Origin: Fimbriosthenelais zetlandica
Lineage: Eukaryota
Assembly (NCBI GenBank): GCA_977030845.1
Contig: OZ365109.1
Coordinates: forward strand, 44,144,001-44,208,000
Direction of reading: 5' to 3'
Length of the DNA stretch: 64,000 nt
In this document: piece by piece, positions 15,901-39,472 of the stretch
Position numbering within the stretch: position 1 is the stretch's first letter
How the letters are laid out: each line of letters opens with the position of its first letter
The notes under the pieces: generated by a model
Told to the model about the DNA's origin: nothing
Databases searched by the model: none
Seen by the model: the letters and a program-made list of their open reading frames with translations, nothing else
Program-made: the position numbers and the translations under genes

Positions 15901-18900
15901 GCAAATTCCAGTATCTCCTGCATCTGCCAACATTTTACGGGTCTTGTGAATATGTACAGAATATAACTTTAGTCATAATATGTTACTTAATCACATCATG
16001 ATGTTTCCATCTTCTAGACGTAGCCCAAAATTTGACGTCTGAAAAATGCCACTTCACCCTCGAGGATGACTGTGGCCTCATGGACATAACCACCCATGAA
16101 TTCTACAGATGGAGACTGCTACGAGAGATCTATGGTAGGCCTACTACATCAGAAAACGTTCTTAATTTTAAATCCTCAATGCAACATACGCTGACAATGA
16201 CATAAGCAATGAGGCAATGTTTCTATACATTGTATTTTATATCAATGGAAATCTAAGCTACTATACTATGTTACTCGGCTACATAATATTATGTGTAATT
16301 TTCTTCAGTATTCAGTGATAAGAAAAATGAATGTTTTTGTTTCCTTTCAAGCTGAATATGCAAGTGCAGAATACCCGGAAAATACCTGTACTTTTTATGC
16401 ACAATGGAGAATTGGTAACAACAATAGTATGGTCCCTACACCCCCGCCAATTGGGGATGTGTCTAATCACCCACCTCCTCCCCCTCCTGGTTCAGAACCT
16501 CCTGTCCCTCCTGGTTCAGAACCTCCTCCCCCTCCTGGTTCAGAACCTCCTGTCCCTCCTGGTTCAGATGATCCTCCCCCTCCTGGTTCAGAACCTCCTC
16601 TTCCCCCTTCTGGCTCAGAACCTCCTCTTCCCCCTTCTGGCTCAGAACCTCCTGCCCCTCCTGGTTCAGAACCTCCTGCTTCTCTTCCTCTTTCACCAAC
16701 CACTATGACAAGCCCTATTACAAGCACCATAGTACCAGCAACTACTACTCCATACGATTCCACTTCACCTAACTATGACGACTATGGTGACTATGACTAT
16801 TCAGCCAGCGGGACAGAACCCTTGAATAGCGAGAAAGAACCCGAAAATGGTAAGACTTTAGTTATAATTAATCTTTGTAAGACAGTGGGTGGGTTGCAGA
16901 AAACCAGTTGGCTTACAGAAATTCTGTTCGCCAAAACCGATGTTGGCAAGCTAGTTGGCGAGCAAAATTAAGCCAAATCCTATACATGTATGTGGTTGGC
17001 GAAACACATCACCAAGAAAAAATGGGCGATTTGGGGATGGCGATGGCGAATCACCAAATATTACATGCAAACCAAAATATTTTTTTAGAACCTATGCATT
17101 AGGCCTAATTAGAACACAACCTAATTAGGCCAAATCCTATTTGTTGTTGGTGAAACACATCGCAAAAATTAGTACAATGATGACAAATCATTTGGCGAAT
17201 TGCCAAATATTATGCAAACAAAAATAGTTCTGTAACCCACGCATTAATTAGAACAACACAACCCTGGCTAAATCCACTCGTTATATATGTTTCAACATAG
17301 GCCTACAATTCTAATTACTATTATTTCTTTCTTTTCTGGTTTAGCGGTCTTCATTTGCAAATTTAGTAAATATGACATCCACGAATGTTCGTTGCTTAGT
17401 CCGAAGCTCAACATTGCATCTGAATCCTGTGCAACATTCATTTTGTCCCTGTACGGTTGTTCCTTCACCACTTCAAGTCTAGTGTTCCTGAAATCTGAAG
17501 GAGAAGATTCTGAGCCAGTGTTCCTTGGACAGACCATGTTAAAACCTTCCTCATCGAAACAGACGGTGGAACTGGAACTAGCCGCAGGTTTTTACGGCAT
17601 TGTGATATCAGCCAGGGCACACTTTGCAGATTTAGTCTTACACGGAATAGAGATAACTGAAGGAGTCTGCATGCAAAATGGTTTGGTTCTGATCATGTTT
17701 TTATAAATTCTTTTACTTTTCTTTTCCATCCTATTTTATAACAGATTTTTATAACAGCATTAATATTTTATAATTATTATTACACTATACTCTATCTGGA
17801 CAATATTTTCCCCCAGAAAAGAAAGATTAAGAATTTTAGCAGCACTGACACATACAGAGACATATCTAAACGGCCATACACGTCAGTTGCTACACCGAAT
17901 ATATATGTATTATGAAAATTAATTCATTCTGTTACTATAGCTACAGTTAATGTGACCAAGCAATACACGGATTTAGATGACGACGAAACGATAGGACCAA
18001 CAGTACCTCCAACACAACCTCTACCTCAACCAACAGATCCAAACACAGGAAATGAGTCAGCAGTTCACCATATCTCAAGTAAGAGTCTGCAATAATGTTG
18101 CCAACTCCCCTGTATTTAATCATCCATAAATGGTGTCATTATTATATTAACATTTATCATATTTCTTTTGACAGTCCCTCTGTTATATTAGATATCAGCA
18201 CAAATTCCTTAAAATCTTTTTAGTGTTTACTCGCATGGACACTTTTTTGAATGCCACTGCACATCGTTATGAGGATTTCATACACCAGTAAGTAGGCTAG
18301 AGCCAAACTCCACCAATTATTGTCCTTTATTGTCCTTAAGTATTTAAGCCAATATTGTACTCTAATAATTAATTCATTAGCTAATAATACATGTACATGT
18401 ATACCACATCTCACATTTAGTCTAATGGCCATAGGAAAGTTGATCGATATAGAGTAAATAACACTCAGATATTTCATCTATTTCAGCTGCACATGGAACA
18501 ACGAAATCTGTAATGGCACTTCCTTTACCCAAGAATTTACTGATATGGGTCTCTGCTATACGTTTAATGGGCGAAATTCAAAGCAACAACTCCTATCCCA
18601 AACAGCAGGTGAATTATCACTAATCCATCTTTAATGTCTGATCTTGTGTGATTAACGGACATCCTCATCCTGATTAGGAACCATATAGATCTGTTCATCC
18701 CCCTCTCGCAAAACTTTTGCGATCCCTCATTGGACCTCCGTACCAAGTCTCGCTGATAAAAACAAATTGAAGGGAAAGTGCTGCGACTGGCTCCGACTTG
18801 CAAAAGATCTGTCACAGCACTGCAGCAAGCCAATGATTTCCTTAGGATGCTCTCGCTGAATGTATTTTTCTCTTGCTGCTGGCCCAGCGAGGGCGCAATT

Positions 18901-21900
18901 TTTCTTAGAATCACTTTGAGCGAAACTTGGCACCGAGAGGTCATGTGAGGGCTCGCAGAAGTTTTGCAAGCGGGAGGAAGTTTGTCTAAGTTTTAGATGT
19001 TGTTTAATTGTGTTGATCAGGTGCAGAACATGGTCTCAATTTGAAAATATATCTGGAGAACAATGAACGTACTGGCGGACCTTTTCCTGATGCAGGAATC
19101 AAGGTCTCGTTGTCTTTACAATCTTTACAACACAATTTTTGTCAAGAATGATTTCATAATAGTAGCCTCAATTAAACCTATATGACGTGTTTTATGTGCA
19201 AAACCCTTATATCAGACTGTTTCTACTTATGCACGTAGATCCATCTCCATGATCCTAGCAACCTGCCAATGGTTAGTGAGACTGGTTTTGCTGCACCTCC
19301 TGGTCTCCATTCCCTTTTTTCCATCAAGTACACAGAGGCAAGTTTTTACAATCATATTTGTTTAACATATTATTGTTGTTAGACTCCTTTTAGTTTAAGA
19401 TGACAAAATGTTGGTCGGGGGATTTGACTAAATTTCTATGTAGTCATCCAAAATTGATATCATCTTTATTATGTGTAATCTCATGACAGACTACAAGTTT
19501 ACCTCAGCCTCATGGTAACTGCACCCAGAAAAATGAATTAACGTACTACCCGGCGGAGGATTACAAGTATACTGTACAGTACTGTCAAACTGAGTGCAAA
19601 ACGCATGCTGCCATTGATGCCTGCAGCTGCAAGGAAGCATACATGTCTGGTGTGTACAAACATTATACAAAATATAGACATGTAATTCAGAAATGCTGCA
19701 TGTCCTATATTCATTTAGCCTCCATTTGTTTGATGCATTCGAATGTTATATAATCTATCTGCAGAATTCAAAAGCGTTAAATTATTAGATCTTCTTTTTC
19801 ACAGGAAATGCTCCATCAACTGTATGTAATATGGACGAATACATCAACTGCATTCTTCGTGCTACCTGTAAGCCTGTCGAGGATTTGTATCTACATAAAT
19901 TTAGTTCTGGACATATACATGTATATAATAGTAGTTAATATTATAACGGTTTCAAATAGCAGTAAACAATATGATTTACTTCAGTTTATGCAGGTTTCAT
20001 GTAAATTTGTACTGAATGTTATATTTATCTATGCATTGTTGAAAACTCGTGTGATTAATGCAATTTGACTTCACCTAGTTTGTCAGCATGCATTTTTGCA
20101 ACTCTTGAACATTAACTTCAACTGTTAATTGCAGCAAAAAAGGTACATTCCTCGGAATGCGAGACAGATCAATGCCAGATAGGCTGCGAGGTCAAATCAT
20201 ATAGTATACTTACTTCTGCTGCGATGCTGAGGAAGATGGATCTAATGAAAAGTCTTACCAAAATCGATGAAGAAAACATACAAACTGTGGAAATCAAACA
20301 TAGGACAAATCCCGAGTTACTATCTAACACTGCTAAACAGCTTTTGAACGCCCTCACAGCGATGGAATACTATATGCACATTGCAGAACTGGAATGTGGC
20401 CTCTCATCTGCTTCAAAATACTCCATAGCTGCTAACTCCTTGCTGTCAATACAGAAACGAATCATACAAGATCTTGACACTGCATTAGAAGACCTGAGGT
20501 TGATAGAAAAGGTCTACAAGGACGTGTTTGGCTACAGAAGGGATGTCCTTCATAGAATACTCGAAGAAATATCCAGTAATTATCTGAGGCTTCTTGAGGC
20601 AGATGGATCATCAAATGTAACATACACTGACCCAGAAACGGATGCCACAATAACTGAATTACGTTCCACAGCAGTTGAAGATATTAACTATGCTCTGGAG
20701 ATCATAAATGACATAATCAATAAGGAAGAAGTTCTTTTCGTTCAACCTATGAGAAAGTACATAAACGAAGCCCCGAGTAGCTCAATTGGAAACATAAATA
20801 GTCGATCATATGCAAATCTCATACCCAGCAGAACTAATTACCAGAGGGTGAAACCAGGAGTTGAGACTGGAGAAAGCAGAGACTATACTCCATATAAAAA
20901 CATAAGGAAAGTATTGAGGACAACTTTGAAGCGCATTTCACGCAAAGGGAGACAAAACAATAATTATGCAGATATAGGGAACTTCTTTGATCTAATTCAC
21001 ACAGCTGAAGAAGTTAAGACGCACACTTCTGAGTTCCCAAAAGTCATACAAGAGGTTAAGGACGCTGACACGATATTGCAAAAAATATCTGACCTAACTT
21101 TGATGTTAGACTTTAATTTTGAAGCCGAATCGCAAAATGTTACCATGGTTTATGATGAGCTTAAAGCAGTGTGTAATAATTTCATGAGTGGTAGCATGGT
21201 AAAGTTACAGCTTTCCCTGTCAGTACACGATGGCAAAATAAACAGTTTTATTGACCAATACATAAAACTGCAGCAGAGGATAGATACTAACCTTGCCGAG
21301 AAAATCTTGAATCATGCAGATCAGATTGAAACGTTGTCTCGAAATGCGTATCAAACCTTATTGTGGGCCATGAATGATATGCAAAAGTACTATAGCACAG
21401 ACAGCATGGATTTTGAAGGACGGGCGAGAAACCTCTTTATATGGAGGAAACCGGAATATTCTGCCGATACAAATGGGGCACTAATTACAAAGTACTCCAA
21501 CAGTCAAACTCTGTGGTCTCCGTACAGAAGCCTTGAATCATTCACTGAGGCAAGTCTACCATACATAGATTCCTCAAACAATGCTTTCCTAAAAAAAAAG
21601 TATAATATAAAAAGGCACTTTAATGAAGTTATTATTTTGCATTTTCAGAATGGCGCTGCAAATAGAGTCATACGATTCGTTCTTCAAGACCTCTTCAGTA
21701 CCATAAATGATGAATTTAAAGCCGTCGGAGAAAACTTCCAGAACCTTATTCGTAAAATAGAGACACCTTTTGAAGAACTGAAGAAAGACTTTCAAGCATT
21801 TACGTCAGAGTTGGTACTGGACAACAATTTCATTAGGTGGGTAAATCTTGTGAACTGAGCCTGGGGCTAATTTAGACAAAATAATGGCAATGACCTCCCA

Positions 21901-22414
21901 AGACAATATTAAAGTAAAGTCACTTCTTGGTCATTAATAATATTATTGGTTCCTTGAGTTGATTATTTTGCAAAGTGTCTCAATAGTGTGACTCTCTCTT
22001 CCTTTATAAGCATGCATGTTCGTGAAATCAAGATATTAATTATCTGTTGTTTGCAGCGACAATTTCCTTGAGGTGGATATTTACTTTGGAGAAATGAAGA
22101 AAGAAAAAGTAACACAGGAAGAAGCTTATCCCATCTCTTCATTCTGGGGTGAGATTCAACACACTTAAATGTATACAAGGAGATGACCATGAACGACAAT
22201 ATATTAACAGCCTTGCCAAACTTCTAATCTTTTTAAAATCTATATTTCAGCCGAAGTGGGTGGATTTCTTGGTTTGCTACTCGGAGCCAGTGTTGTGACA
22301 GTCTTTGAATTCATTGATTTGATCGTTTCCAACACTTGCCGGAGGAAACGTGTGGAAGACCCCAAGTTTGCCATGAAAGTCACCCCAATGACACAAAAGA
22401 AACTAATGTTCTGA
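3962..22414 (+). CDS. Giant multidomain DEG/ENaC (ASIC/degenerin-like) channel subunit, paralog 1; exon 6 interrupted by a DNA transposon
   Basis: Exons: 3962-3980, 4233-4332, 4600-4767, 4938-5008, 5134-5526, [5674-5713 / TE / 10168-10264, or TE-derived acceptor 10154-10264], 10971-11324, 11451-11639, 11838-11948, 12189-12341, 12487-12879, 13872-14021, 14230-14402, 14658-14832, 15045-15174, 15560-15774, 16018-16134, 16352-16849, 17345-17680, 17941-18078, 18224-18287, 18487-18608, 19021-19103, 19239-19337, 19490-19649, 19805-19867, 20135-21549, 21649-21836, 22057-22148, 22251-22414. Motifs FTQDTTLHG, LPFPAVTVCN, FTDMGLCYTFN, EVGGFLGLLLGAS. About 2,147 aa if the TE acceptor is used; otherwise a pseudogene. 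Confidence 0.85.
4233..4767 (+). CDS. Paralog 1 exons 2-3: DEG/ENaC N-terminus (HG motif), TM1 and post-M1 strand
   Basis: KWGRLLYDFTQDTTLHGIRY; hydrophobic AIWIILILCTFTGFLAMIIVSLI; LPFPAVTVCNNNMFR. Confidence 0.93.
5134..5526 (+). CDS. Paralog 1 exon 5: PAN/Apple-like domain
   Basis: VTLNGCQILCSDVHGDTCSSIIYVWKTKSCVLL fits the PAN C-x3-C-x7-C...C-x-L pattern; phase 1-1 exon. Confidence 0.7.
5714..10167. mobile_element. Non-autonomous CMC/EnSpm (CACTA-like, CACTG ends) DNA transposon inserted in exon 6 of paralog 1
   Basis: 11-bp TIR CACTGTTAGAA (5714-5724) / TTCTAACAGTG (10157-10167); 2-bp TSD TG (5712-13, 10168-69); subterminal AAATGGC(C/G)G repeats at both ends; removing it restores CAT-TGC-GAA, matching paralog 2 CAT-TGT-GAA; no transposase recognised. 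Confidence 0.88.
8613..9200. repeat. Two diverged tandem copies of a GGGGCACTCGGAATCAAA-headed repeat nested in the CACTG element
   Basis: About 8620-8800 and about 8983-9190 share gcactcggaatcaaa..tagggcttgttt..tgtttttaatcat.catgtacccctttt..caaagagga. Confidence 0.6.
10154..12879 (+). CDS. Paralog 1 exons 6b-11: MAM1, compact kringle, LDLa, MAM2
   Basis: MAM: YDHT, HCLEFYF, GIAIDDI. Kringle: GIDYMG..TTVSGKTC...GPHC...EYCHIPFC. LDLa: [32 protein letters not shown]. MAM2: CEFSDEYLCGY, YLTFFVYF, IALDGIKL. Confidence 0.88.
10349..10592. mobile_element. Short non-autonomous element with imperfect TIRs and internal (TTAGGG)-like microsatellite
   Basis: ATCCAAGATGG..TCTCGCGAGA at left versus TCGCGAGACTT..GCCATCTTAGAT at right; internal gttagggttagg. 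Confidence 0.5.
10786..10884. mobile_element. 99-bp MITE
   Basis: Perfect 21-bp TIR TATAGTCTTTCTCAGCTCAAC / GTTGAGCTGAGAAAGACTATA. Confidence 0.65.
13020..13740 (-). mobile_element. Degraded LINE (CR1/L2-like) endonuclease fragment
   Basis: Minus-strand frameshifted PGY...R..GGG and GD.-like APE motifs; intron 11 of paralog 1. Confidence 0.35.
13872..17680 (+). CDS. Paralog 1 exons 12-19: MAM3 with nested CUB, MAM4 with nested Pro-rich linker
   Basis: CYFDGADLCGY; CUB SGCFASPGYPDTY..YDVEETYDTIE..VLVFASD..QGFEACY; MAM C-half LTSP..C..AAIEHMNIYNQSC; CHFTLEDDCG; (PPGSEPP)n; LLSPKL..C..LHGIEITEGVC. Confidence 0.8.
14094..14163. repeat. Small inverted-repeat element
   Basis: GGGGCCTGTTTCAG ... 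CTGAAACAGGCCCC; related core (tttcccataga..gcattgctaa.ggttgtt) at about 28500-28580. Confidence 0.55.
16478..16680 (+). repeat. Coding 24/27-bp tandem repeat encoding (PPGSEPPx)n
   Basis: cctcctggttcagaacctcct repeated about 8 times in exon 18 of paralog 1. Confidence 0.9.
16860..17280. repeat. Interspersed repeat (TTGGCGA / TCGCCAA / GCCAAATCC modules)
   Basis: Same modules recur at about 34940-35130 in a different intron of paralog 2. Confidence 0.55.
18224..20230 (+). CDS. Paralog 1 exons 21-27 (start): DEG/ENaC palm, beta-ball and Cys-rich thumb
   Basis: DFIHHCTWNNEIC, FTDMGLCYTFNG, GLNLKIYLE, DAGIKIHLHDP, GFAAPPG, PHGNC, YCQTECK..CSCKEAYM, C.IGCEVKSY. Confidence 0.93.
18705..18970. mobile_element. 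MITE
   Basis: TIR CTCGCAAAACTTTTGCGATCCCTCA / TGAGGGCTCGCAGAAGTTTTGCAAG; related copy at about 41994-42186. Confidence 0.65.
20135..21836 (+). CDS. Paralog 1 exons 27-28: helical/coiled-coil insertion of about 500 aa at the knuckle position
   Basis: ORF 20224-21858; long amphipathic/heptad stretches between the post-thumb C-x3-C-x4-Y motif and NFLEVDIYF. Confidence 0.85.
22057..22414 (+). CDS. Paralog 1 exons 29-30: pre-M2 strand, TM2 with GAS filter, C-tail
   Basis: DNFLEVDIYFGEM..AYPISSFWAEVGGFLGLLLGASVVTVFEFID..KKLMF*. Confidence 0.93.
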
Positions 22415-23910: not shown

Positions 23911-26900
23911 GTAAAGAAATCATCTTCTAAATATTCACTTCAAATTATTATAAAGAGTAAATTGGCTTGACAGTGGCTTTGATTATTGTTCTAATCTATT
24001 TACATTGATCGGTTTTTTGAAAATATTATACACACTACATGTACATAATAAAAAGGTTTCTTGTCCCAAAGACCCAAGATGGGGCCGACTTTTGTACGAC
24101 TTCACTCAGGATACAACTTTACATGGGATTCGTTACATTACACAGAAGAAGGCTCACTGGCTCCGAAGGTATAGATCTAATGACACTTAACATTACTTAA
24201 TTAGTGAATTTGGGGTCTAACTTTTTGGCCCAAGGTCTTCAGGACTGTAGCAAGGCAGCACCCCGCCAGTCATCACCCCCCACCCCCCCCCCCCCGCCCG
24301 CCCCCCACCCCCCCCCCCCCCCAAAAAAAAAAGGCTGTCTGCATTATAATGCCTGCCAGTGTTCAGGACAGTGATCAAATAATTTGCCATTTTATGTTGC
24401 ATAGCTTGAAACCAATTTAAGGGGGTGTTGGCCACGCCAGCATTATAAGTCTCCCAAAAAGAGTGTTCTGATATGTTGTAACTGTCAAGTGCTTTCTTAT
24501 AGTCTACTAATCTAAGTATTCTAATTTGACCCATTTCATAAAATGTACTATTATAACAAAACTTCAGGGATGGGGGTGAACGACATAAAATACTGCCCGA
24601 ACTGGCGTAGCCAGTGAGGGCTTAGTATTTTCAGTGAGGGCTTAGTATTTTCATCGAGTTCACCCCCATCCCTGAAGTTTTGTTTTTATTCCATGGTCCC
24701 TACGGTCTTAAATTATATTTTTGTGTTTTAAAAAAGAAATAACCGAAATAGGACGTCATAGTAACAGTTGCAAAAGCTGGCAGACAATATGAAAAATATG
24801 CCTCATTCTGAGAGCGGGCAATATTGTGTTGAGAGCGGGCAATAAGTAGCACTTATTGCCCGCTCTCAAACTAACCATGGAATAAAATCATTATAAATTA
24901 TGCAAATGGCCCATATGGTTAGACAGGTTGCATTAGTCTGCATAATTAGTATTATAGTGCCTAGATGACCAGAGGGAATAATAGTAATTGATTGAATCAT
25001 TTTGTCAATGGAGCAAACAAAGCAAGCAATAGTATAACAAAACTTCAGGGATGGGGTCAACGAGATGAAAATACTGCCCGAAACGGCGCAGCCGTTGAGG
25101 GCATGTGTTTTCATCGAGTTGTCCCCATCCCTGAAGTTTTGTTTTTATTCCATGGTCCCTACGGTCTTAAATGATATTTTTTGTGTTTTAAAAAAGAAAT
25201 TACCGAAATAGATCTACCTTAGAGCTGCACGACATTGGGTTGACTTGCTTTAGCTTGCTTGACGACCGTGCGGCACCGCCATTTTGATTGAACTTGACAT
25301 TGATTTATTAGGTCATCCAATTTTTTCTTACTTTAATTTTTAATACTCAATTGGGGAATGGAACATATTCTTTCATTTATTTGTATTTATTTATGTCAGT
25401 TATTAAAATTAATGCATAGTTAGAGGCATACTTCGGGGCCTATCGCTAATGCCGCGCTCCTGCTCTGCCAGATGACGTCCCATTATGACGTCATAGTGAC
25501 GTCGCAAAAGGGGCCGCTCTCTGGCAACCAGTACGAGAACTACGCCTCGATCTGAGAGCGGGCAATATAGTCTTGAGAGCCTGCAATACGTGCTACTTAT
25601 TGCAGGCTCTCAAACTAACCATGGAATAAATATTAACATTTTATGGACTTGAACACGTTATAAGGTCCTGTTACTCCAGAATTTTATGAGATCAATGGCC
25701 TGGTGTAATTATACGACAATATACAAAGGTGTGGGATCAATGGAGTGGTTTCTTTGACGAGATGGACAACTCATTGTAACTTTTATTGATTCTTAAATTT
25801 GATTGGGGTTAATATGGGTATTAGCCTGGTAACATTCGTCATGACCTTTTACCACTCCAAATCTTAAAGTCCATAAATTGTGTTTTTTATTCCATCCAGG
25901 GTGATATGGATAATACTAATTTTGTGTACATTTATTGGATTCTTGACAATGATAATTGTCAGCCTTCTCAAGTATTATGCTTATCGCACAACCACAAGTG
26001 TTGCCATAACCTATGAAGATCAACTTCCCTTCCCTGCCGTTACTGTCTGCAACAACAATATGTTCAGGCAAGTAAAATGATTCTTAACATTATGAACATT
26101 TAAGGGCAATATACCAACTAAGTTCAGAATATCAGAGGATAATGTTCCTGCAGAATGTCTCATTATTTTCACAATCGTCATTTTAGTGGTCTTTGCAGTA
26201 ACTCTTTCTCTTTTATAGTAGCTCTCTAGTTCTCTCAACACAGACCATTTTACAGACATGTTGTACAAGAAAATCGTGGCGAGGGTGGGTCGACAAGGGT
26301 ACCCTCATCGAGTGATTGTATTGTACAGGTTATGTTTTTGACAACACAGTGCTTGGATAAAGCAATAATGAGCAACTGTCCAAACATTTTTTCAAGATAA
26401 CAGCGTTGGAACAATGCAATCGCTCAGTGAGGACATACCCTCACCGTACCTCGTCCTCGGCATGATAATATATTATACTTGTACAAAGCATGATATAGAA
26501 TTGCTCACACATATTAAATTGATTATTCAGGTTGACGAAAGCGTTTGAATATGGACTCTACGATACATTACAGAACAATTTCGAGGAGACTGAATTTGAT
26601 GGTAATTTATAGGGCCTATTATAGGACTATATGCCTTTGGTTAATAATTTTAAGAATATATTTTTCCACTTTAGTTCGATGATACAAGGTGTGCTGCTTT
26701 TTGCTCCCTCATGGGATACATGTACACAACTAAACCAAATGTTCCTACCCTCAATTGCAGAAATAAACGAATGCTCACGAAAATATTATTTTCAAACTGA
26801 ATTCTGTTTCGATGGGTTAAAGAAGCAGAAGAACGTGATCGAAAAATGTAAGGGCAACGTTAAGAGTCATTTGACTTACGTTAATGTTACTCTGCGAGGA

Positions 26901-29900
26901 TGTCAAATCCTGTGTTCTGATGTTCATGGTGATACATGTAGTAGCATTATATATGTCTGGAAGACAAAGTCCTGCGTGCTTTTAGCAGGAAACTGCATTT
27001 TCAAGGAGAAGGAGAACAAATCAAACAATGAGACCAATGATGGTTCTAAGGAAGGTCCACGAGTCAGTCAGTATGACAGCAAAGGCTATCCCCTTCATCC
27101 CTGTGGGGATGAAATGCCTGATATGGAAATCTATAAGAAACTTATCTGCCATAAAGGTAATATTGCTATGACTTCATTGACTTTATTGCTTTATTGTTTT
27201 CATAATTGCAATAGTGGTGGATTTATATATTTTTTTTAAATGTAAATGACACAATGTAAAATCTTAATTTTGATGTTGAGTCCGCCCTTTTGATATCTGC
27301 AGGATTTCCTTTGGTAAAATGTGATTGGGAGACACCTCATTGTGAATTTGAAATTTTGGCAACTGTGAGGGAAAAGGAATCATTTCAAGTTGTTGAAGCA
27401 ATTCAAAACCATCCTGATACTGATCATACCCTTGAAACAAGTAAGTAAAAGGGATTAATAAAAAAAAGCAAATTAACCTACAAATTTAGATTAATTTTAA
27501 GTGACTCTTGATTAAGTAGTAAAACTTAGTAGTTCTAAGTCTCTTCTCTTTTCAGGATATGGACACTACCTAAGACTGCCCACTACAAAGAATGCTCCAG
27601 AAAATTCCCAAGCACGTCTGACACTACCTTACTCCAGATTTGAATCACACTGCCTGGAATTTTATTTCCAGCCGACAGGTGATGTCCCCGATAGAATTTA
27701 CATTCATCAGATCGATGACAGCTTTGGAGTTCACCTTGTGGCTGCCTACGAAGTAGGTTTTAAAAAGGACCAGTGGAACCGTGCATATATCCATTTGCTT
27801 GATGGCATCTACATGCTCGAGTTGAAGGTTGAAAGATCGAATGTGAAAATGTCAGAAACATCAGGGATAGCAATTGATGACATCATTGTCGACAGATGCT
27901 TGCAATTCAGTAAGTAGAATGCAAATTAAAGCATAATTTGTCATGAAGTGAATATAAAATGTATTTATATGGAACACAACGAGACGTACGTTGATCTGTG
28001 ATTGCAGATGGGTCACATGAGTGGTGAAGACCATCATGAGTGATGCTTGCAGTCCCTTAATCTTCGCTCGCTTCTCACAAACATTGCACTGTTAATGCAA
28101 TTTCCACGTGTGATTTTGGTCAGCAAAACGCAGATCACCGTGTTGGAAGTTGTGATATAAACAATGTATACCGATTGTTTTAGGTGGACGTGAGTGTAAA
28201 CGCACAAGGACAGGCATAGATTACATGGGCTCAAAGATGACAACTGTCAGTGGTAAAACCTGCAAGACTCCATGTCACAATAGGAACAATGACCAGGGTG
28301 GTCCTCATTGTCAAGTGGCAACAGCAGATGCAACATATACATATACAGATTATTGTCACATCCCATTCTGTGGTGAGTAGGCCTAATCAGATTCCCAAGT
28401 AGCAAAGGATCCAAGTTTTTCTGTTGGCATTTTCAATTGGTAAAGTTCCATTTAATACACTACATTGGTGTCCTGATAAAACCTCGTAAGTGACATAATA
28501 CAAGGGACTTACGAGCTTTCATCCGTGTAATAATTTCCCATAGACAGCATTGCTAATGGTTGTTGATACAGGCTCCTGACCACCAACGATATCAGTGTAT
28601 ATCAGCTACATTTTTATATCCAGCATGTCAGAAGGATCAGTTCAAATGCAGTGACGATTTTTGCATTCCGGGCAACCTCACATGTGATGGCAAACCTGAC
28701 TGCGTGGATGGTTCCGATGAAACGTTACCCTGTGGTAATACTTTATTACTATCTCAATAATTATTATTATGAGATTGTCCTCAAAATTAATAATATAGAA
28801 ATTATCCGTATATGCCTTTGAATCTGATGCCTCTATCTCTTAATATACTAATATATAGGCTATATATTTAGGACCCATGCAGGGTATGTACACCTCGAGA
28901 GGTATACCAGGGAACTTGCAGGTTTTGGTTGCCTAAAAAGTAAAAGTATATAGATTCTAGATTCTGAAAAATCGTAAAATAACTATCGCCTTTACAGTAT
29001 TAAAAGCTTCTAGTATGATTACACTACTGTATCTTATATTCTTTAGCGGATAAAATGAGTGTTGACTGTGAGTTCTCGGATGAATATCTCTGTGGTTATC
29101 AATTTCCCGCGGGGTCTTCACCGTGGAGTAGAAAAAGACCAGTTGATTATTTAGACACGGAACAGAGAATTTCTAAGGATCATCTTGGTTCATCATTGGG
29201 TGAGACTATTATTTCTTTATTATTATTTTCTTAAAGTGACACTGTCTGTTTGCAATTGCAGTTTGCATATTTTCAACATTCCATTTAGATCCACCCCTAC
29301 TTGAGGGGTACTTTTCAGTGGAAAGGGCCATGATCTGAAAATACACTGCAAATATGAAGTACGGGGTGGTGGTGGGGGGGGGGGGGGTCATGTAAAATCT
29401 GCAGGACCGCATGGGTTCATTTATTTAGTTCTGTAAATAAGGATTTGGACATGAAATACAGGACTTAATGTTCTGGTATTGATATCCTTCGGAGAATGTA
29501 CTGCATGATATTGTATTTTTCTTATTGTCTTCTAATATCTTTAGATATATTCATTTTCTAGGATATTTCATGGATCCGTATAGCGGACTGCTTCAAGAGG
29601 GCGAAAGATCTATGTTGATTTCTCCCTTGACGACAATTGACAATAATTCGACCTATCTCAAATTCTTTGTATATTTCCGTAACACCACATGGGGTTTAGC
29701 ATTATACGCAGCTCCTGAGAGTAGGCCTATGTCTAGTTACTCATTCGAGCTTGTTCCATATACAATGACTAAAGTAAGAAATGGATGGGTAGAAGAAACT
29801 GTACGGTTACCAAAAGGATCATACAGAATCATCTTTGAAGCAACTGCCGGACCTGCATTCAAAACTGACCTTGCTTTGGATGGGATAAAACTAGTGCATC

Positions 29901-32900
29901 TTCAAGGGTCTGAAGAAGATAGTGATAGGGAAGCATCAAGTGTTACATTTGACACAGGTAAAACCATTTATTATTAATAATAGGCCTAAAGGCTTTCATT
30001 TCTCTGCCCCATGGGTAGTCAGCTTTGTCAAGTGTTTATGGATAATTGATGTTACAGAGAGGCCCGTATACATATTTCATTAATGTTTACATTAATGTTC
30101 CCTGATTACTCTACACTTGGTAATCCGTCCTATATTCCTCCTATATCTATAATTATCCTAGAATGACTAGCGATGGAGGGAGGACATTTATTTTTCCGAT
30201 GTCAGTTTGGGAGGATTCTATTTTTTCTAGATCGGATTTACGAGTCTTGGGGACTCTATAGTATAGGAGTAGAGTGAATTGAGACTAAAATGCAAAGGTT
30301 TGAGGGGCATTCAGATCCATAAAATGTGAGAATGGGAGTTGATAGAGTCCGACAATCTAACCATTCCTCCATGCACTGGGACTGATGAAGGAGGAGGAAC
30401 TTACAATCACCAAATGTAGGAATGGAAGTTAGAAAGGAATTGAAAATTGTGATAAATTAATTAACTTAATTACCAAGAGTCTAGGGTGAGCATGAGAGTC
30501 GTCCTACATGCTCATGACATGAGAGGAGTTTTAGGGTACAATTTGCACCATTTTAGCAACTTACTTATGTGGACCATGGGAAAAGATTTATATTATTCAT
30601 AAAAAATAGAGGATAACAATATCATTTTTTATACAGGAAATTATAATGGAAGCTGTGACTTTAGCAGTAGACATAAATGTGGCTATAAACAATATTCCTG
30701 GTCCACAAAAGCGGAATGGCAGATCTTCCCGCTCGCACTACTCTGGATTTCATTACATGCCGCAGATGACAGTTATGGCGTCAGTGGTAAGACTGCTTTC
30801 TTTTTATCATATCAAATTATAAGTATACTGTATACAGCTAGTGTGACACGTGTATAATATGCACACGTCGGATTCAAGTGATAAGAAGTCTGATGTAAAA
30901 GGAGTTAAATGTTAATTGCTAACACATATTAATGATTGCAAAATATTATGTTTTATGGATTTTGCAGCCGATCGAGAGTACCACACAGAAGCTTCTGGCT
31001 GTTTCACCTCTCCCGGTTATCCAGACAATTATGATCGAGACGAATATAAAACCTATCTGATTGGAGGTGAACCCGGTACAACCATAGAGCTGGAGTTTAC
31101 TGGTATTTACGATGTAGAGGAAACATATGATGCAATCGAAGTAAGTTTTTTTTATAAATATGAATAAATAAAATACTCAGATGTAAGTAAATTATATGAG
31201 CTCGCGAATGTATCACTGAAAATAAGACCCTGATAATTAAGATCTCATGCAGTCCGTTGGATCAGACCAACTCGATCTTCTTTTGCTCTTAGACTACACT
31301 AATTCGTGAAACAAGACTCTATGGAGCTGTTATTTTAAATTCTGAACCAGTTAAACGCAACTTAGTGAAAAGAAGTATTTACTACAAAGCATCAACTGCC
31401 TGGAACAACCTCCCTGCATCAATTAGGAACCTTGAGACAATAGAGCGTTTTAAATACCATCAAAAAACTACCCTCAAACACATAAGGTCCTCTTATGCCC
31501 TTGCCTAATAATAAATTTTCTTGAATAATCAAGTTATAATTTTTTTTTTTCTATCATTGTTTAAAAACTGAGAACCGCATCCCAAGCCATTTCATTGACC
31601 ATTATCACATGTAACCAACTTCATTCATCCAAATGTTTAATCTCTGTTTTTTTTCTCTTTTCGCCATCAATTAATATTAATAATCTCTGTAATTAACGAA
31701 AATCTGTGTATCATCAATTACTATCTCTGTAACTAATGAAGATTGTAAGTTTAATTTTGTTTTTCTTATTTTGAATGTTTTGAATGTTTGTTTACTTAAT
31801 TGTTTACTACCTTGTTTACTTAAATGTTTTCTAACCGCAGTATTTTTTTCAATTTGCAATCTGGACTACACTGAAAAGCGGCTCGATAGGGCCGAGTTGT
31901 ATTCAGAATAAAGAACGTTGAAACTCAATTCTGATCAGCTACTTATTATTCTATTCAAATGTACTTCCTGGCAGTGCATTTTAATTGTTACTTTTGAAAT
32001 CAGTTCATGATCCTGTAATCTTACAAGACCACCTCTGTTCAAACAGATATGGGAGTACATCAATAATACCTTCACGTTCATAGAGAGGTATGATGAGAAT
32101 ATCAAGCCACCGAAATATACCTCAATATCACCTCTTGTATTAGTGGTGTTCGAGACAGATGAGGAGACGCAGTTGCAAGGTTTTCAGGCATGTTACAAGA
32201 TAAATGGACATAATGAATCTGGTGAGTGAGAAGATTATAATATTACCGTATTAGAGAAAATTAGAGAGGGCAATATCTGGCCAAAGAAGTAAACCGATAC
32301 CCAAGGTAGTGAGTGTTTTTGTTAGCTGTTTCATAGTCCCCATGACACTATGTTCCTTCACCAAATTGTATTTAACATCCTAAATAAAAAGAATGTTTTG
32401 TGGGTCTCTGTGCACTTCTAGCCAAAAGATTGTGTGCCTAGCTCAACTTAATGTATAGTATAGCCTCTGCGACTGCGTTTTTTCTGAACTCAGACAATAA
32501 GAAAATGCAAGCAATCGGAGTTGTTCGCAGTCTGTTCCAGGCATTCGACTCATAATTGTTTTTATTGTTTGGTTTACAGATCATCTACTGGTGCTGGTAG
32601 TTGCAGGACCTATACAGTACAATGCCCAAATAATTCTTACATCCCCACGACTTGATGTGAAGACAGAACAATGTGCCATCATTGTTGTGTCCACCTTCAC
32701 TAATTTTTGGTAAGTTGTAATCATTATCAGATTTTAAATGAGATCACATTATCCTATATACACCAACAACGTCCTAAAATAATGTTGTATATAATTACAT
32801 TACTATATTATCGTTCTCAAGCACGATTATAATATTCTCAAGATAAAATAAACTTATCACAATATAAAGAGACTTTAGGTGGGTTCTATGTTGTCAATAA

Positions 32901-35900
32901 TAAATAAACTGTCATACATTATAGGGCATGCACCATATCCTCGGATGACACGTACGATTGTGAAGAAAAAGAATATAAATTGAGAAATGAACCAGATCAT
33001 GTCAGATTGCCTTATGAGTTAAGAAGGGGTGCACAGTTCTTGACACTCACGTTTGATACCAGTACCATATGGGGACAGTCAATTTATGCGGTTATAAATA
33101 AGATTATGATTTACAACCAGTCTTGTGAAGCTCTTGGTAAGTATTTAGTTTGTTTTGACACATCCTTATAGAGGGCAGAATTCATTGCAATTCATTGCAA
33201 CTGCATCCCAAATGTAGTGCAGGGCGCGGGCATCAGTAGTAGAGTGTATAGGGATCCTATTTATTAGATAATGACCAATAAACAATAATTGAGTAGATGT
33301 CTACAAAATATATAGCAATACAAAGCAACATATTGCCTTTCACTCGCATCATGCTATATTTATATTCACCCAATGGGAATTTTTTTCATCTCCTAGATTC
33401 AAAACAAAATTTGACATCTCAAAATTGCTACTTCACCCTGGGGAATGACTGTGGCTTCACGGACATAACCGTCAACGAATACTACAAATGGAGGCTGCAG
33501 CCAAAGATCTATGGAACCCGTAAGTCAGAAAAAGTCCTATTTCGAAATTAATTTTGAATGTTAGATCCCTGAAAATTAGATCCCAACTCTGTAATATATT
33601 CTCTGTACAATCGTTAGAACTCACGGCTAGGAAAATAAAAATTATTTGTTTTCCCTTTGAAGCTAAATATTCGTTGAGAGACTACAGTGACTTCCTCTGC
33701 AACTTTTATGCACAATGGGGAATTGGTAGCAACCACAGCCTGGTTCTTACAACCAATTCACCTTATTCGCCCAGTACTACAAATGGACCGAGCTCATCTT
33801 CTGCTTCTCCTCTTCTTCCCCCTTCCTCTACTCCGTCTTATTCATCAACAACTGGTACCACGTCCACTACAAGCCGCATATTATCAACGACTACACCTTA
33901 CTCTGGCTTTGACAGCGGGGTTGGACCCCCGAAAGGTAATAGTTATTGTGTGATGAATTTCTAGCCTATATGAAAATTGAGTATATTGATATTAATTAGA
34001 ACAATGTTCACTGACATGAGAAAACTAAAATCTAATTATGGTATGTACCAACACTTGTCAGTCTTACAAAATAAACGATTCAGAAACTTCGCAAATTCAT
34101 TTATAATTATGTTTTAACAAGGAATCATAACACTCACTGTTTTACTCTTATTCTTTTCTTATTTAGACGCAGTCTTCATTGCGAAATTTAGTCAATACGA
34201 CATTCAAGAATGTTCCTTGTTTAGTCCGAAGCTCGACATTGAATCTGAATCCTGTGCAACATTCATTTTGTCCCTGTACGGTTGTTCCTTCACCACTACT
34301 AGTCTAGTGTTCCTGAAATCTGAAGGAGAAGATTCCGAGGCAGTGTTCCTTGGACAGACCATATTAAAACCTTCCTTATCAAAACAAACGGTGGAACTGG
34401 AACTAACGGAAGGAGAATACCACATGACCATCACAGCCAAGTCTCACTTTGCAGATTTAGTGTTACATGGAATAGAGATAACAGAAGGAGCCTGCATTCA
34501 AAATGGTGGGTAATCATGTTTCTTATCCTTCTTCAGCATTATTTGTCTAGTTCTGTTTCACCTTTGAAATCCATTTAGTATATTGTGGGTATACATTTTC
34601 GCTGGATGTTATCCATAAACCTCCAGTTAAATTTCATCTTTTACCAAGGTATCTCAATTAAAGTGTACATGTATAACTTTACTGCATCTATAGGTACAGT
34701 TAATGTCACCAAGCAATACACGGAAGTAGATGAAAACGAAGGCACCGGACAACTAGGACGTGAAGTAACCTTACCTCCTCCTCGACCAATAAATCCAAAA
34801 AGAGAAACTGAGACACCACTTCACCATGTCTCAAGTAAGAGTCATAAATAGAGCTATATAAATATAGGCCATGCTAAAAACTTATCTACGCTTAGTCTAA
34901 TAAATATTGTTAATATTCATTTTGAAATGGGCACGATGGACGCGTTGCATAAACCCAGTTGGCTTGCAGACACAAATTCTGCTCGCCAAAAAACGATGTT
35001 GGCGAGAGAAAATGTATGCATTGCAGAAACTCATCCCTCAAGAATTTCTGCTCGCCAAAATTAGGCCAAATCCTATTTGTTGTTAGAAGCCAAAATATTT
35101 ATGCAAGCCTAATCTTTTTGCAACCCGCGCAATAAGATGAAGGTTGTCATTCCTGGGCCGGACTAACCTGGTGTTGTACAATAAAATGGCCGATGGTGAG
35201 GGATCGGCGAGGGTGCCCTGGCGGTGCGATTAAATTGTTGAAATGCTCTTTTTTTCTAAAAAGTGCTTGGATAACTGCTTGTTAATGCATTGTCCAAGCA
35301 CTGTTTTCTTAATAAATAATGCTTCGACAATGCAATTGCTCCGCGATCGAGGGTACCCTCGCCTATTCCTCGCCATCGACGATCTTATTGTACAACAGGG
35401 GGTAAATGTGTCACGGACCATGCAAGGAATCAATGATCTGATCGAATGGATGACAAACTGGATGAATTATTGAATACAAAATTAATAATAAATTTCTTCA
35501 AATCTTTCCAGAATTTACCCCCATGGACAAGTTTTTGAATGCAACAGCCCATCGTTATGAGGATTTTATTCACCAGTAAGTGAAGCTTGGATAACAGCTA
35601 TAAAGCCTCAGTCATATAATAGATATAGTGACAAACTTGCTCTTATTTCATCTATTTCAGCTGCACCTGGAACAAAGACATCTGTAATCATAATGACTTT
35701 ACCGCCGAATTTACTGATATGGGTCTGTGCTATACGTTTAATGGGAGAAATTCAAAGCAACAAATCCTATCCCAAACAACAGGTGAATTATTTCTATCGT
35801 CTATCTTTTGTGGATGTATCCTATCAGGGACAGTATGCATTATTATATTTATGCACAGTATTATATTCATCTAGGTCTTTTTCTCAGGGTTTTATTATTC

Positions 35901-38900
35901 TGATTTCCAGGTGCAGAGCATGGCCTCAATCTAAAAATATATTTGGAGAATAATGAACGAACTGGCGGACCATTTCCTGATGCAGGAATCAAGGTCTCCG
36001 TGTTTTTTGTAACCATCTTTACAACCTCAATTAGAATATTCTTAGAAATCTATAAGATTTCTTTTATTGCAAACTCTTGAACTATTTCTAATTATTCTTG
36101 TAGATCCATCTCCATGATCCTGAAAACATGCCACTGGTTAGTGACACTGGTTTTGCTGCACCTCCGGGTCTCCATACCCTTTTTGCCATCACATACACGG
36201 AGGCAAGATTTTATTTAACTTTTTAACATAATTTTTAAAACATTTTTAGACTCCTAACATGATACCAAAATGTTGGTTGCAGGATTATTATTTGATTAAA
36301 TTCCCATGTAGTCATCCAAAATTTATATGCATAATCTTTATGACAGACTACAAGTTTACCTCATCCTTATGGTAACTGCACCGAGAACAATGAACTGACG
36401 TACTACCCGGCAGAGGATTACAAGTATACTGTACAGTACTGTCAAACTGAGTGCAAAACGCATGCTGCCATTAATGACTGCAGCTGCAAGGAAGCATACA
36501 TGTCTGGTGTGTACAAACATTATACATGTTATTAAAAAAATATAATTTTAAGTCGTATTCAACCCAATTTTCTAACAGAATGTGTTCCAAACAATACAGA
36601 CAATAATACATGTACATGTAGCCAGTGTGTAGCTCGTTGCAACACAAAGACTGTTATCTCCTGAATATAAGTCTTAAAATGTATTGACTCTTATTCACAG
36701 GAAAAGCACCATCAACTGTATGTAACATGGATAAATACATCAACTGCATCCTTCGTGGTTCATGTAAGCCCTTATATTCATGCAAGTTCACTATTAAAAG
36801 TACTGACTGTCAACTTTATGTATTTCAATATGATCTTGCTTAGTTTTTGTGTATGTTTTGTTGCCTATTGTTTATTTTTTCTTCTCTGTCAATTGCAGCA
36901 AATAAATCACATTCCTCAGAATGCGAGACAAATCAATGCCAGATAGGCTGCGAGGTCAAATCATATAGTATACTTACTTCTGCTGCGATGCTGAGGAAGA
37001 TGAATCTAATGAAAAGTCTTACCAAAATCGATGAGGAAAACACACAAACTGTGGAAATCAAACATAGGGCAAATCCTGAGTTACTATCTAACACTGCAAA
37101 ACAGCTTTTATACGCCCTCACGGCGATGGAATACTATATGCACATCGCAGAACTGGAATGTGGCCTTTCATCTGCTTCAAAATACTCCATAGCTGCTAAC
37201 TCCTTGCTGTTAATACAGAAAAAAATCATGCAAGATCTTGACACTGCATTACAGGACCTGAGGTTGATAGAAATTGTCTACAAAGACGTGTTTGGCTACA
37301 GAAGGGATGTCCTTCATAGAATACTGGAAGAAATATCCAGTAATTATCTGAGGCTCCTTGAGGTAGATGGATCATCACATGCAACCTACACTGACCCAGA
37401 AACGAATTCCACAATAACCGAATTACGTTCTGACTCAATTGAAGATATTAAGTATGCTCTGGAGATAATAAATGACATAATCAATAAAGAAGAGCTTCTT
37501 TTCGTTCAACCAATAAGACAGTACATAAACGAAGCCCCGAGTAGCTCAATTGGAGACATCGATGGTCGATCATATGCAGATCTCATACCCAGCAGAACCA
37601 ATTACCAGAGGGTTAGAGCTGGGGTTAAGGCTGGAGAGAGTAGAGATTACACTGCATATACAAACATGAGGAGTGTATTGTGGAAAACTTTAAGACGGAT
37701 TTCACAGCAAGGGGGAGATGACAACAATTATGCAGATATAGAGAACTTCTTTGATCTAGTTCGCACAGCTGAACAAGTTAAGAATAACACTTCTGAGTTC
37801 CCAAATGTTATACAGCAGGCTAAATATGCTGACACGTTATTGAAAGAAATATCTTACATTACTTTGATGTTAGACTTCAACTTTGAATCTCAATCACAGA
37901 ATGTTTCCATGGTTTATGATGAGCTTAAAGCAGTGACTAATAATTTCATGAGTGGTAGCATGGGAAAGGAAGCCCTTTCCATCTCATTACAGAATGGCAG
38001 AATCCAAAATTTTATTGACGAATTTAGAAAACTACAGGACAGGATAGACACCGAGCTTGCCGCAAAAATCCTGAGTCATGCAGATCAGATAGAGACGCTG
38101 TCTCGGGAAGCCTATATAACTCTCTTGTGGGCCATAAGGGATATGCAACACTACTATAATAAAGACAGTATGGACTTCGAAGAACATGCAAGAAATTTCA
38201 TCATATGGAAGAAACCGGAATATTTCCCAGATGCAGAGGGGGCCCTAATTTCGAAGTATTCGGATAGTCACTCTCTGTGGTCTCCTCACAGGCGCCTTGA
38301 ATCTTTCACCAAGGCAAGTCTTCACCTAATACTATGCTTTTTAAAAATTTATAAATAGGCCTAGGCAGTCAACTTAGGCCTATATCAAATGGTCCCACAG
38401 ACCGTTCTAAATTGTTCGACCATTTAGAAAGACCTGGAGGGAAATTTGATCCATTCTCCTTTATTTCTTCATAATCTATAGAAAACCATTCCAATCCCCC
38501 CACCCCCATCCCGTTGCACAACAATGTGGTTGTACAGTAGCTGTTCCCTATAAATAAACTTGTTTGCATTTTCAGAGTGGCGCTGCAGATAGAGTCATAA
38601 GATTTGTTCTTCAAGACCTCTTTGCTACCCTAAAGAATGAATTTAGAGACGTTGGAGAAAACTTCCAGAACCTTATTCGTAAAATAGAGAAACCTTTTGC
38701 AGAATTGAAAAAAGACTTCCAAATCTTCCAATCAGAGTTGGAACTGGGAAACAATTTCGTACAGTGGGTAACCTTTGCGATTGTCAATAAATGCAAGCAG
38801 ATATCTAAAAATAATATTTTCCTCTTATGGTACTGGAGGCCAGGATTACTGAAATGAACTCCAAACTCCAAAGTTCTTAAATTAATGTCAATTTATAATG

Positions 38901-39472
38901 ATACATGTTTTACGGTTCCAGGGACAACTTCCTTGAGGTTGATATTTATTTTGGAGAAATGAAGAAAGCATCAGTGACACAGGAACAAGCTTATCCCCTC
39001 TCTTCATTTTGGGGTGAGTCTGCACTTTGAGATATAGTATAGTTCTATCATTAAATTTAGGTGATGCTCGACGATACCGTGGGCGATAATAGAGGCTAAT
39101 CCCATACCTGTTATTATCCGTTTCAATTTCCAACATTCAGCCTGTATTTTTAAAAAGTTATAAAAAGTTACTCAGTGAGTTCCTCGGTATGGTATAGCAC
39201 CAAGTATAGCTCATTGCTAATTTGGCGGACTCTGCACCATGATCATGGATGATAGCCCTATACAGTTAGCAACTTTGTCAGCTAATGTTCTGATAATCTA
39301 TATTTCAGCTGAAGTGGGTGGATTTCTCGGTTTGCTACTCGGAGCCAGTATTGTGACAGTCTTTGAATTCATTGATTTGATCGTATCCAACACTTGCAGC
39401 CGGAAACGTGTGGAAAACCAGAAGTTCACATCGAAAGTCACCCCAATAAAACAAAAGAAACTACTGTTCTGA
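23886..39472 (+). CDS. Giant multidomain DEG/ENaC channel subunit, paralog 2 (apparently intact, about 2,087 aa)
   Basis: Exons: 23886-23910, 24072-24168, 25900-26067, 26531-26601, 26761-27156, 27303-27440, 27556-27909, 28184-28372, 28624-28734, 29047-29199, 29562-29957, 30637-30786, 30968-31140, 32047-32221, 32580-32709, 32925-33136, 33397-33519, 33663-33935, 34167-34505, 34694-34834, 35512-35575, 35661-35782, 35911-35993, 36104-36202, 36347-36506, 36701-36763, 36899-38313, 38576-38763, 38922-39013, 39309-39472. Sum 6,264 nt with all junction phases compatible; same core motifs as paralog 1. Confidence 0.93.
24550..25632. repeat. Duplicated palindromic repeat modules in intron 2 of paralog 2
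   Basis: AACAAAACTTCAGGGATGGGG..CCCCATCCCTGAAGTTTTGTT at 24555-24684 and 25036-25143; TGAGAGCGGGCAATA..TATTGC..GCTCTCAAACTAACCATGGAATAAA at about 24825-24897 and 25553-25632. Confidence 0.7.
26262..26460. mobile_element. Diverged copy of the palindromic MITE family of about 235 bp
   Basis: ttgtacaa..aaaatcg..gcgaggg..agggtaccctc..cagtgcttggata..tgtccaa; matches the copies at 35167, 42226 and 56858. Confidence 0.5.
26761..34834 (+). CDS. Paralog 2 exons 5-20: PAN-MAM-kringle-LDLa-MAM-MAM(CUB)-MAM(S/T linker) insert in the finger domain
   Basis: Exon-for-exon homologous to paralog 1, with an uninterrupted exon 6 (GFPLVKCDWETPHCEFEIL..DHTLET). Confidence 0.88.
31190..31915 (+). mobile_element. 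CR1/L2-type LINE 3' fragment
   Basis: Translates VKRSIYYKASTAWNNLPASIRNLETIERFK (WN-x-LP motif of the ORF2 C-terminus); 3' stem-loop gaaaagcggctcgatagggccgagttgtattcagaataaa. Confidence 0.7.
35167..35399. mobile_element. Palindromic MITE (family with copies at 42226-42445 and 56858-57074)
   Basis: TGTTGTACAATAAAAT..GGCGAGGGTGCCCT ... AGGGTACCCTCGCC..ATCTTATTGTACAACAG; internal GTGCTTGGA / TGTCCAAGCAC hairpins. Confidence 0.75.
36899..38763 (+). CDS. Paralog 2 exons 27-28: helical knuckle insertion
   Basis: ORFs 36847-38358 and 38564-38857; closely similar to paralog 1. Confidence 0.85.

Follow-up and report, generated by a model that had tools for sequence, protein, structure and literature searches.

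How can an ion-channel gene of the DEG/ENaC family contain more than a thousand codons of adhesion and receptor modules, and do modules and pore belong to one protein? The question is raised by a stretch of 64,000 nt from Fimbriosthenelais zetlandica (assembly GCA_977030845.1, contig OZ365109.1, positions 44,144,001 to 44,208,000), referred to here as the window. It is AT-rich animal DNA that harbors three tandem genes, A, B and C, all on the plus strand; coordinates are positions within the window. A first-pass annotation, made from the letters alone, proposed that in gene B about 1,150 residues of PAN, MAM, kringle, LDLa and CUB modules, encoded by 16 exons between the strand following the first transmembrane helix (TM1) and the entry to the palm, had replaced the finger domain of the channel. 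Our analysis indicates that each of the three genes is probably a single complete DEG/ENaC channel-subunit gene with an arm of 1,151 residues at the tip of the finger.

Gene models and intron phases

Segments of the ASC profile (PF00858) are collinear along gene B and cover profile positions 21-80, 149-193, 232-262, 265-335 and 431-454. The HG motif (TLHGIRY) lies in frame within 23954-24187, and the strand following TM1, FPAVTVCN, is encoded in the TM1 exon. Together, the HG motif, the ordered ASC segments and an exon for the second transmembrane helix (TM2) with its filter motif show that gene B is a complete DEG/ENaC gene whose ectodomain contains foreign modules. The only matches to the TM1 exon in the ESM Atlas were short ASC fragments.

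For the exon model we chose AG/GT sites such that each open piece stays in frame; the splice sites are predicted from the DNA. In copy B, 21 exons between 25900 and 36008 together give a stop-free translation of 1,325 residues, all acceptors are preceded by pyrimidine tracts, and nearly all donors are GTAAGT-like. The cassette consists of 16 exons (26761-34834; 3,453 nt, 1,151 amino acids), which together encode 43 cysteines and 14 N-x-S/T sequons for N-glycosylation; its introns are 115 to 906 bp long. The intron ahead of the cassette has 159 bp and the one following it 677 bp. The least certain boundary in the model is the acceptor of the linker exon at 33663.

Of 17 introns within the cassette and at its borders, 15 are in phase 1 (binomial P ~1e-6, if 30% of introns are in phase 1). 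The two exceptions are the intron inside CUB, which is in phase 0, and one of the introns inside MAM3, which is in phase 2. The PAN-like, kringle-like and LDLa modules occupy one exon each with phase 1 on both sides, and the outer boundaries of CUB and of MAM1 to MAM4 are all phase-1 introns, so that the modules have the class 1-1 symmetry of exon-shuffled domains. Each MAM domain is in addition split at a phase-1 intron just past a DHT-like motif. In MAM3 this internal intron is exactly where the CUB domain is located, between the first and second MAM3 exons, and in MAM4 it is exactly where a Ser/Thr/Pro-rich linker, itself phase 1-1, separates the two exons. Joining 26601 to 35512, with the cassette removed, keeps the frame and leaves an ordinary-looking short finger of 45 residues, as an ancestral phase-1 intron at that spot would predict. 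Symmetric 1-1 units in a phase-1 intron of a channel gene are the signature expected if the arm arose through exon shuffling.

Could the cassette instead be an independent gene that sits within one of the channel gene's introns, or could a transcript end behind it, in either case with modules and pore on separate proteins? Upstream of the first cassette exon its reading frame stays open as far as an ATG, behind which a short hydrophobic stretch is encoded; at the other end, reading on past the donor of 34834 gives only four codons before a stop. However, the similarity between copies A and B begins just 7 nt before the acceptor, which shows the upstream ATG extension to be unconserved and suggests that it is intronic, with no conserved start of its own to be seen for the cassette; the intron ahead of the cassette has only the 159 bp given above in B and ~125 bp in A; the last cassette exon ends at a phase-1 donor without a stop; and both junctions are phase-matched, with the same arrangement and the same junction phases in the distant assembly described below. 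We consider the nested-gene explanation highly unlikely and rejected it, given the short flanking introns, the unconserved ATG and the matching junction phases. For the same reasons, and because the junctions are kept in the distant assembly, cassette and pore are very likely parts of one polypeptide, their joint transcription being deduced from the gene structure.

Table 1. Genes of the window and predicted features of copy B, with the cassettes of copies A and C.
Feature	Position	Strand	Description
Gene A	~4,560-22,400	+	DEG/ENaC with cassette
Cassette, copy A	5134-18078	+	Same exons, same splice phases; MAM1a exon split by insertion
Gene B	~24,000-39,470	+	DEG/ENaC with cassette; Pfam scanned on stop-free pieces
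TM1 and post-TM1 strand exon, B	25900-26067	+	Phase 2-2; GC donor AG/GCAAGT; Pfam ASC 2.6e-15, profile 21-80; aligns with ASIC5, ASIC1
Alpha1-like finger exon, B	26531-26601	+	71 nt; phase 2 in, phase 1 out; last channel exon ahead of the cassette
PAN-like Cys-rich module, B	26761-27156	+	Single exon, phase 1-1; Pfam PAN_1 E 8e-4
MAM1, B	27303-27909	+	Exons 27303-27440, 27556-27909; phase 1 throughout; Pfam 3.4e-10, profile 39-156
Truncated kringle (best call), B	28184-28372	+	Single exon, phase 1-1; 63 codons; Pfam 5.5e-3
LDLa, B	28624-28734	+	Single exon, phase 1-1; 37 codons; Pfam 4.1e-12
MAM2, B	29047-29957	+	Exons 29047-29199, 29562-29957; phase 1 throughout; Pfam 4.3e-7
MAM3 with nested CUB, B	30637-33136	+	MAM3 exons 30637-30786, 32580-32709, 32925-33136
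CUB inside MAM3, B	30968-31140, 32047-32221	+	Two exons; Pfam 8.4e-7 and 0.011
MAM4 with linker, B	33397-34505	+	MAM4 exons 33397-33519, 34167-34505; linker 33663-33935; all phase 1
Pro-rich tail exon, B	34694-34834	+	Phase 1-1; last cassette exon; weakly conserved
Channel resumption, B	35512-35782	+	Alpha3-like 35512-35575; beta3 35661-35782; Pfam ASC 1.8e-7, profile 149-193
TM2 exon, B	39221-39469	+	GAS (G-A-S) filter motif; Pfam ASC profile 431-454
Gene C	~41,550-60,100	+	DEG/ENaC with cassette
Cassette, copy C	43279-56762	+	Same order and phases; ~30-58% identity to B; retroelement in one intron

Several introns are of the GC-AG type with a GCAAG donor: those at 26068 and 36203 in B, at 4768 and near 19300 in A (the latter the counterpart of 36203), and at 43636 in C. 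At the end of the TM1 exon (26067 in B) the donor is GC in A and B, and GT at the same position in C and in the second assembly. In all there are two sites at which A and B carry a GC donor where C carries GT, and copy C has a GC donor of its own following the PAN-like exon (43636).

Position of the cassette in the finger

The place of the cassette can be read from the solved structures of chicken ASIC1, to which the TM1 exon aligns over residues 43-100 and the beta3 exon over residues 173-209. The finger between these points comprises ~72 residues in ASIC1; here it comprises 24 residues, the cassette, and 21 residues. The alpha1-like exon ahead of the cassette is open in one frame only, encodes an LTKAFEYGLYD-type segment and is kept in A, C and the second assembly; the beta3-side exon carries a C.W...CYTFN motif. 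From their position we infer that the flanks are the equivalents of alpha1 and alpha3, and that the cassette takes the place of only the middle of the finger, alpha2 and its loops. The alpha3 exon alone was too short for a structure search to give a match. The arm is extracellular by topology: all of its modules are of extracellular types, and they lie in an extracellular loop.

These results change one part of the first-pass annotation and bear out others. The finger is interrupted at its tip and not replaced, since the alpha1-like (24 residues) and alpha3-like (21 residues) segments still flank the insert. The length of the modular region was right, and 16 is the number of exons in the cassette itself, whereas 17 exons lie between the post-TM1 strand and the palm entry if the alpha1-like exon is counted. 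The phases given for the single-exon PAN, kringle and LDLa modules and for the boundaries of the MAM and CUB blocks are those of our copy B model, and the proposed signature of exon shuffling is recovered as symmetric 1-1 units within a phase-1 channel intron whose removal keeps the frame.

Module identities

Two of the four MAM domains exceed the Pfam cut-off of 26.4 bits (PF00629): MAM1 with 40.4 bits and MAM2 with 30.4 bits. Using these two domains we built an in-house MAM profile, whose scores we compared with those of 1,800 shuffles (maximum 7.3 bits). Without the CUB exons, MAM3 reaches 14.5 bits with this profile in B, 19 in C and 7.2 in A. The LDLa module (PF00057) scores 46.5 bits against a cut-off of 24.1; it has six cysteines and an acidic calcium-binding cluster of the form DxxDCxDGSDE, and DGKPDCVDGSDE is present. 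The first CUB exon (PF00431) scores 29.7 bits over profile positions 5-61, with a cut-off of 21.4, and the second 16.5 bits over positions 70-110.

Searched with a profile built on the kringle-like exons of all three copies, the PDB yielded 34 sequences at E values up to 1, every one of them a kringle; they include prothrombin, plasminogen, apolipoprotein(a), ROR1/2 and HGF. The matches fall into two blocks, residues 6-26 and 49-81, and skip residues 27-48, with all six cysteines retained. The module is therefore best called a truncated, kringle-derived domain that appears to have lost its middle third. Its AF2 model has a pLDDT of 70; Foldseek gave no significant match, and the kringle entries that it returned have TM scores of 0.46-0.48 at E above 3. 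The PAN identity of the first cassette module is unconfirmed: the exon has no relevant PDB profile match and its AF2 model has a pLDDT of 35. A homologous exon is present in the second assembly. A phmmer search of the MAM exons against the PDB gave no match, and no donor was identified at the sequence level.

Three tandem copies and selection on the cassette

In tblastx and tblastn comparisons the cassette exons occur in the same order in A, B and C, while the introns do not align. Where A and B could be matched, individual exons are 49-97% identical, the linker aligning only over its first 27 residues. Splice sites of the same phase are found at homologous positions in A and C. The ranges that the first-pass annotation gave for the same structure in these copies, those listed in Table 1, end on splice sites of the right phase.

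Nei-Gojobori counts on aligned codons of A and B give a dN/dS of 0.40 for the cassette (1,059 codons), 0.03 for LDLa, and 0.19 for the channel exons that were compared; the constraint on the cassette thus appears looser than that on the channel core. Between B and C the silent sites are saturated (pS ~0.80), whereas the proportion of replacement differences is 0.42. This indicates that the cassette has been translated and constrained since before copies B and C split. An exon that was split by an insertion in copy A and a few exons with dN/dS near 1 might be taken to mean that the genes are decaying relics in which the cassette no longer matters. However, the frames of B and C are open over more than 1,100 codons, LDLa shows almost no replacement relative to silent change, the replacement sites are not saturated between B and C, whose silent sites are, and the conservation of splice sites extends to all copies and to the second assembly. 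We regard decay as extremely improbable; a pseudogene was rejected on the strength of the open frames and the purifying selection.

The silent divergence between A and B varies more than 6-fold by exon, from 0.14-0.19 in the TM1, kringle-like and MAM2a exons to 0.85-0.96 in the PAN-like, MAM3a and linker exons, which suggests patchy gene conversion between the tandem copies. The insertion in the MAM1a exon of copy A lies between ...CCCCATTG and TGCGAATTTGAC..., and the remaining splice sites of this copy are kept. In copy C the MAM4 linker exon (55134 to ~55800) encodes at least 200 residues of Ser/Tyr-rich low-complexity sequence; the Ser/Thr/Pro-rich linker of B has ~90 residues.

A second assembly

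Between the thumb/palm exons and TM2, copy B contains a single exon of 504 codons without a Pfam family (36844-38355), with counterparts in A and C. An exhaustive search of 1.84 billion proteins with this helical exon found six ORF-sized relatives only, the best with 32% identity. Two of the six lie on long contigs of the ENA assembly ERZ25767047, which probably represents another species, because no relative of the B exon with more than 32% identity was found.

We read one of these contigs, ctg37433, upstream of the helical exon and searched it with profiles of the A, B and C exons. Over ~39 kb and on one strand it contains, in this order, TM1 (E 5.5e-15), the alpha1-like exon, the PAN-like exon, MAM1b, the truncated kringle, LDLa, MAM2a, MAM2b, MAM3a, MAM3c, MAM4a, MAM4b, alpha3, beta3 and the helical exon. 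Pfam calls along the contig are ASC (2.8e-14), MAM (1.2e-10), LDLa (2e-13), MAM (1e-18) and ASC (3.9e-8), the two MAM domains scoring 41.9 and 68.1 bits, above the cut-off of 26.4. The cassette is at ~25-45% identity; the located units have the same intron positions and phases, and LDLa (111 nt) and MAM4b (339 nt) have the same lengths as in B. The CUB, MAM3b, linker and tail exons were not detected with these profiles on ctg37433. In ctg37558 of the same assembly MAM4b lies just upstream of alpha3 and beta3, and nothing else was found in the 10 kb read upstream.

A further contig, ctg38253, and ctg37433 have near-identical stretches from the PAN-like exon to MAM3a; ctg37433 has ~8 kb extra between LDLa and MAM2a, with long unrelated ORFs. 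The two may be haplotypes that differ by an insertion, or the result of a recent duplication.

Intron phases in related genes, which the first-pass annotation had named as a check, are the same at homologous positions in A and C and, for the units located there, in the second assembly. Given the same order, positions and phases in that assembly and the conservation in A and C, the architecture is old and under selection, and not the product of a mis-joined or nested gene.

Several findings weigh against reading each gene as one intact channel whose arm is built from the named modules. The domain calls of the first-pass annotation hold for MAM, LDLa and CUB, which exceed their Pfam cut-offs, but the kringle-like exon scores 17.4 bits against a cut-off of 34.3 and has 62-63 residues where a kringle has ~80; PAN/apple (PF00024) stays below its cut-off with 19.6 against 21.4 bits; and the second exon of MAM4 has a weak Pfam MAM match (E 0.049), with an in-house profile score not above shuffles. 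In copy A the MAM1a exon is broken by ~4.4 kb of inserted DNA (~5715-10165). In the comparison of A with B, some exons are close to neutral evolution (dN/dS of 0.95 for MAM3c, 1.4 for the tail and 0.70 for MAM2b). Neither the exhaustive search with the 504-residue exon nor the word-index searches found an annotated or transcript-derived homolog. Finally, every unit is phase-symmetric, so that the cassette could be skipped in part or completely in the mature mRNA.

This last point, together with the in-frame join of 26601 to 35512 and its ordinary-looking finger, leads to an explanation in which the cassette is optional: its phase 1-1 exons would be skipped in whole or in part, the main channel would have the short finger of 45 residues, and the long form would be minor or tissue-specific. 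We lean against this explanation, although it is a real possibility. The cassette exons are under purifying selection in the three copies and in the second assembly, which argues that they are translated in some form. An optional cassette is compatible with a complete channel-subunit gene carrying the finger arm, and does not exclude it.

Proposed origin and possible function of the arm

The cassette may have been captured from a donor gene, for which the first-pass annotation had proposed a MAM/LDLa receptor-like protein. In the scenario that we propose, a phase-1 intron of the channel gene would first have received symmetric phase 1-1 exons, and two of the MAM domains would later have taken up further units at their internal phase-1 introns. 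These events would predate both the divergence of the three copies and the separation from the line that led to the second assembly. Because paralogs with saturated silent sites and a distant assembly have the cassette in common, it is old, and a recognizable recent donor is not expected.

The arm would consist, in order, of a PAN-like module, a MAM domain, a truncated kringle, LDLa, a second MAM domain, a MAM domain with CUB nested inside, a MAM domain with a mucin-like linker nested inside, and a Pro-rich tail. A trimeric channel would show three such arms. The modules, which are of the adhesion and ligand-binding kinds, would attach to a partner outside the cell, be it matrix, the surface of another cell or a large soluble ligand, and binding or pulling would be transmitted to the finger, which would drive thumb and wrist and so open or modulate the pore, as in other members of the family. 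By analogy with these, the finger would act as a gating loop, and the simplest role for the arm would be to bind or tether and thereby to influence gating. The more specific notion of a self-tethered channel, in which the MAM/LDLa/CUB arm serves either as the extracellular link long looked for or as the receptor of a large ligand, and gates the pore directly by pulling on the finger, is rather doubtful at present, and we put it forward tentatively. If true, tether or receptor would be in the same polypeptide as the channel, and the arm together with the helical insert of ~500 residues would form a very large ectodomain machine. Alternatively, the arm may have a role in assembly or localization alone.

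In the FMRFamide-gated channel FaNaC of annelids and molluscs, the finger segments from alpha1 to alpha3 form the agonist pocket, whose closing rotates the ectodomain and pulls the wrist open (PMC11026163). The cassette emerges from the same segment. FaNaC, however, binds a tetrapeptide in a pocket of its own finger helices, whereas in these genes a multi-domain arm stands in for the missing alpha2 region, and any ligand would therefore bind at a distance from the body of the channel.

GRIP of ENaC has ~80 residues and a family-specific fold, and its inhibitory tract is removed by proteases. The insert described here has 1,151 residues of mobile MAM, LDLa, CUB and kringle-like modules with their own exons. 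The alpha and gamma subunits of ENaC nevertheless resemble these genes in belonging to the same superfamily and in having extra finger sequence between alpha1 and the later helices, at the gating corner (PMC11026163). This raises the question of whether proteases control the arm as an inhibitory or regulatory module, with cleavage or shedding, and not ligand binding or force, setting the activity of the channel. The cassette lies at the corner of the finger where ENaC has its protease and ion sites (PMC11026163), the linker and tail exons (33663-33935 and 34694-34834) encode long exposed linkers, and basic motifs are found in the kringle-like and MAM2a exons. However, no conserved furin-type site was found in the cassette, the basic motif of the kringle-like exon is missing in the second assembly, and MAM, LDLa and CUB are binding modules and not known inhibitory peptides. 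Control of this kind is unlikely.

Mechanosensing by DEG/ENaC channels has been proposed to depend on tethers outside the cell whose nature is little known (PMC7958617, PMC9108448). The C. elegans channels MEC-4/MEC-10 and tethered ENaC, like the genes analyzed here members of DEG/ENaC, are thought to be gated via links to the matrix (PMC9108448, PMC7958617). Their tethers are separate proteins or N-glycans, whereas here adhesion-type modules would be part of the channel polypeptide.

The module types of the arm are those of MAM/LDLa receptors and proteases; LTK, MALRD1/MAMDC4, enteropeptidase, meprin and neuropilin share them. These proteins are single-pass, whereas the modules described here are located between the two transmembrane helices of an ion channel. 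The C. elegans EGAS proteins, which consist of EGF repeats and an ASC domain, also combine DEG/ENaC with mobile extracellular modules; the type of module differs, and to our knowledge the EGAS modules are not inserted in the finger. The local module order of the arm, MAM-LDLa-MAM, is that of LTK and also of ALK (for ALK, PMC2708929). Full-text literature searches that combined DEG/ENaC with MAM, LDLa, CUB, kringle or exon shuffling gave no description of a channel with such modules.

Peptides, protons and proteases, and possibly mechanical tethers as well, act on DEG/ENaC channels at the finger corner. An adhesion or receptor arm of 1,151 residues that occurs there naturally would provide a direct test of how remote events are passed to the gate, and of whether an extracellular tether can gate a member of the family. 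As an instance of exon shuffling into a polytopic membrane protein the genes are also exceptionally clear, down to the placement of a domain within a domain at a phase-1 intron. Automatic annotation is likely to split or mislabel genes of this kind, and the family may therefore be under-counted.

Repeats in introns and between genes

A repeat of ~250 bp, present in either orientation, is found within introns and in the DNA that separates the genes, at 35143-35412, 42214-42450, 56836-57078 and 26287-26396. The first three are ~75-93% identical to each other in translation; for the fourth the value is ~50%. The repeat looks like a small non-autonomous transposon.

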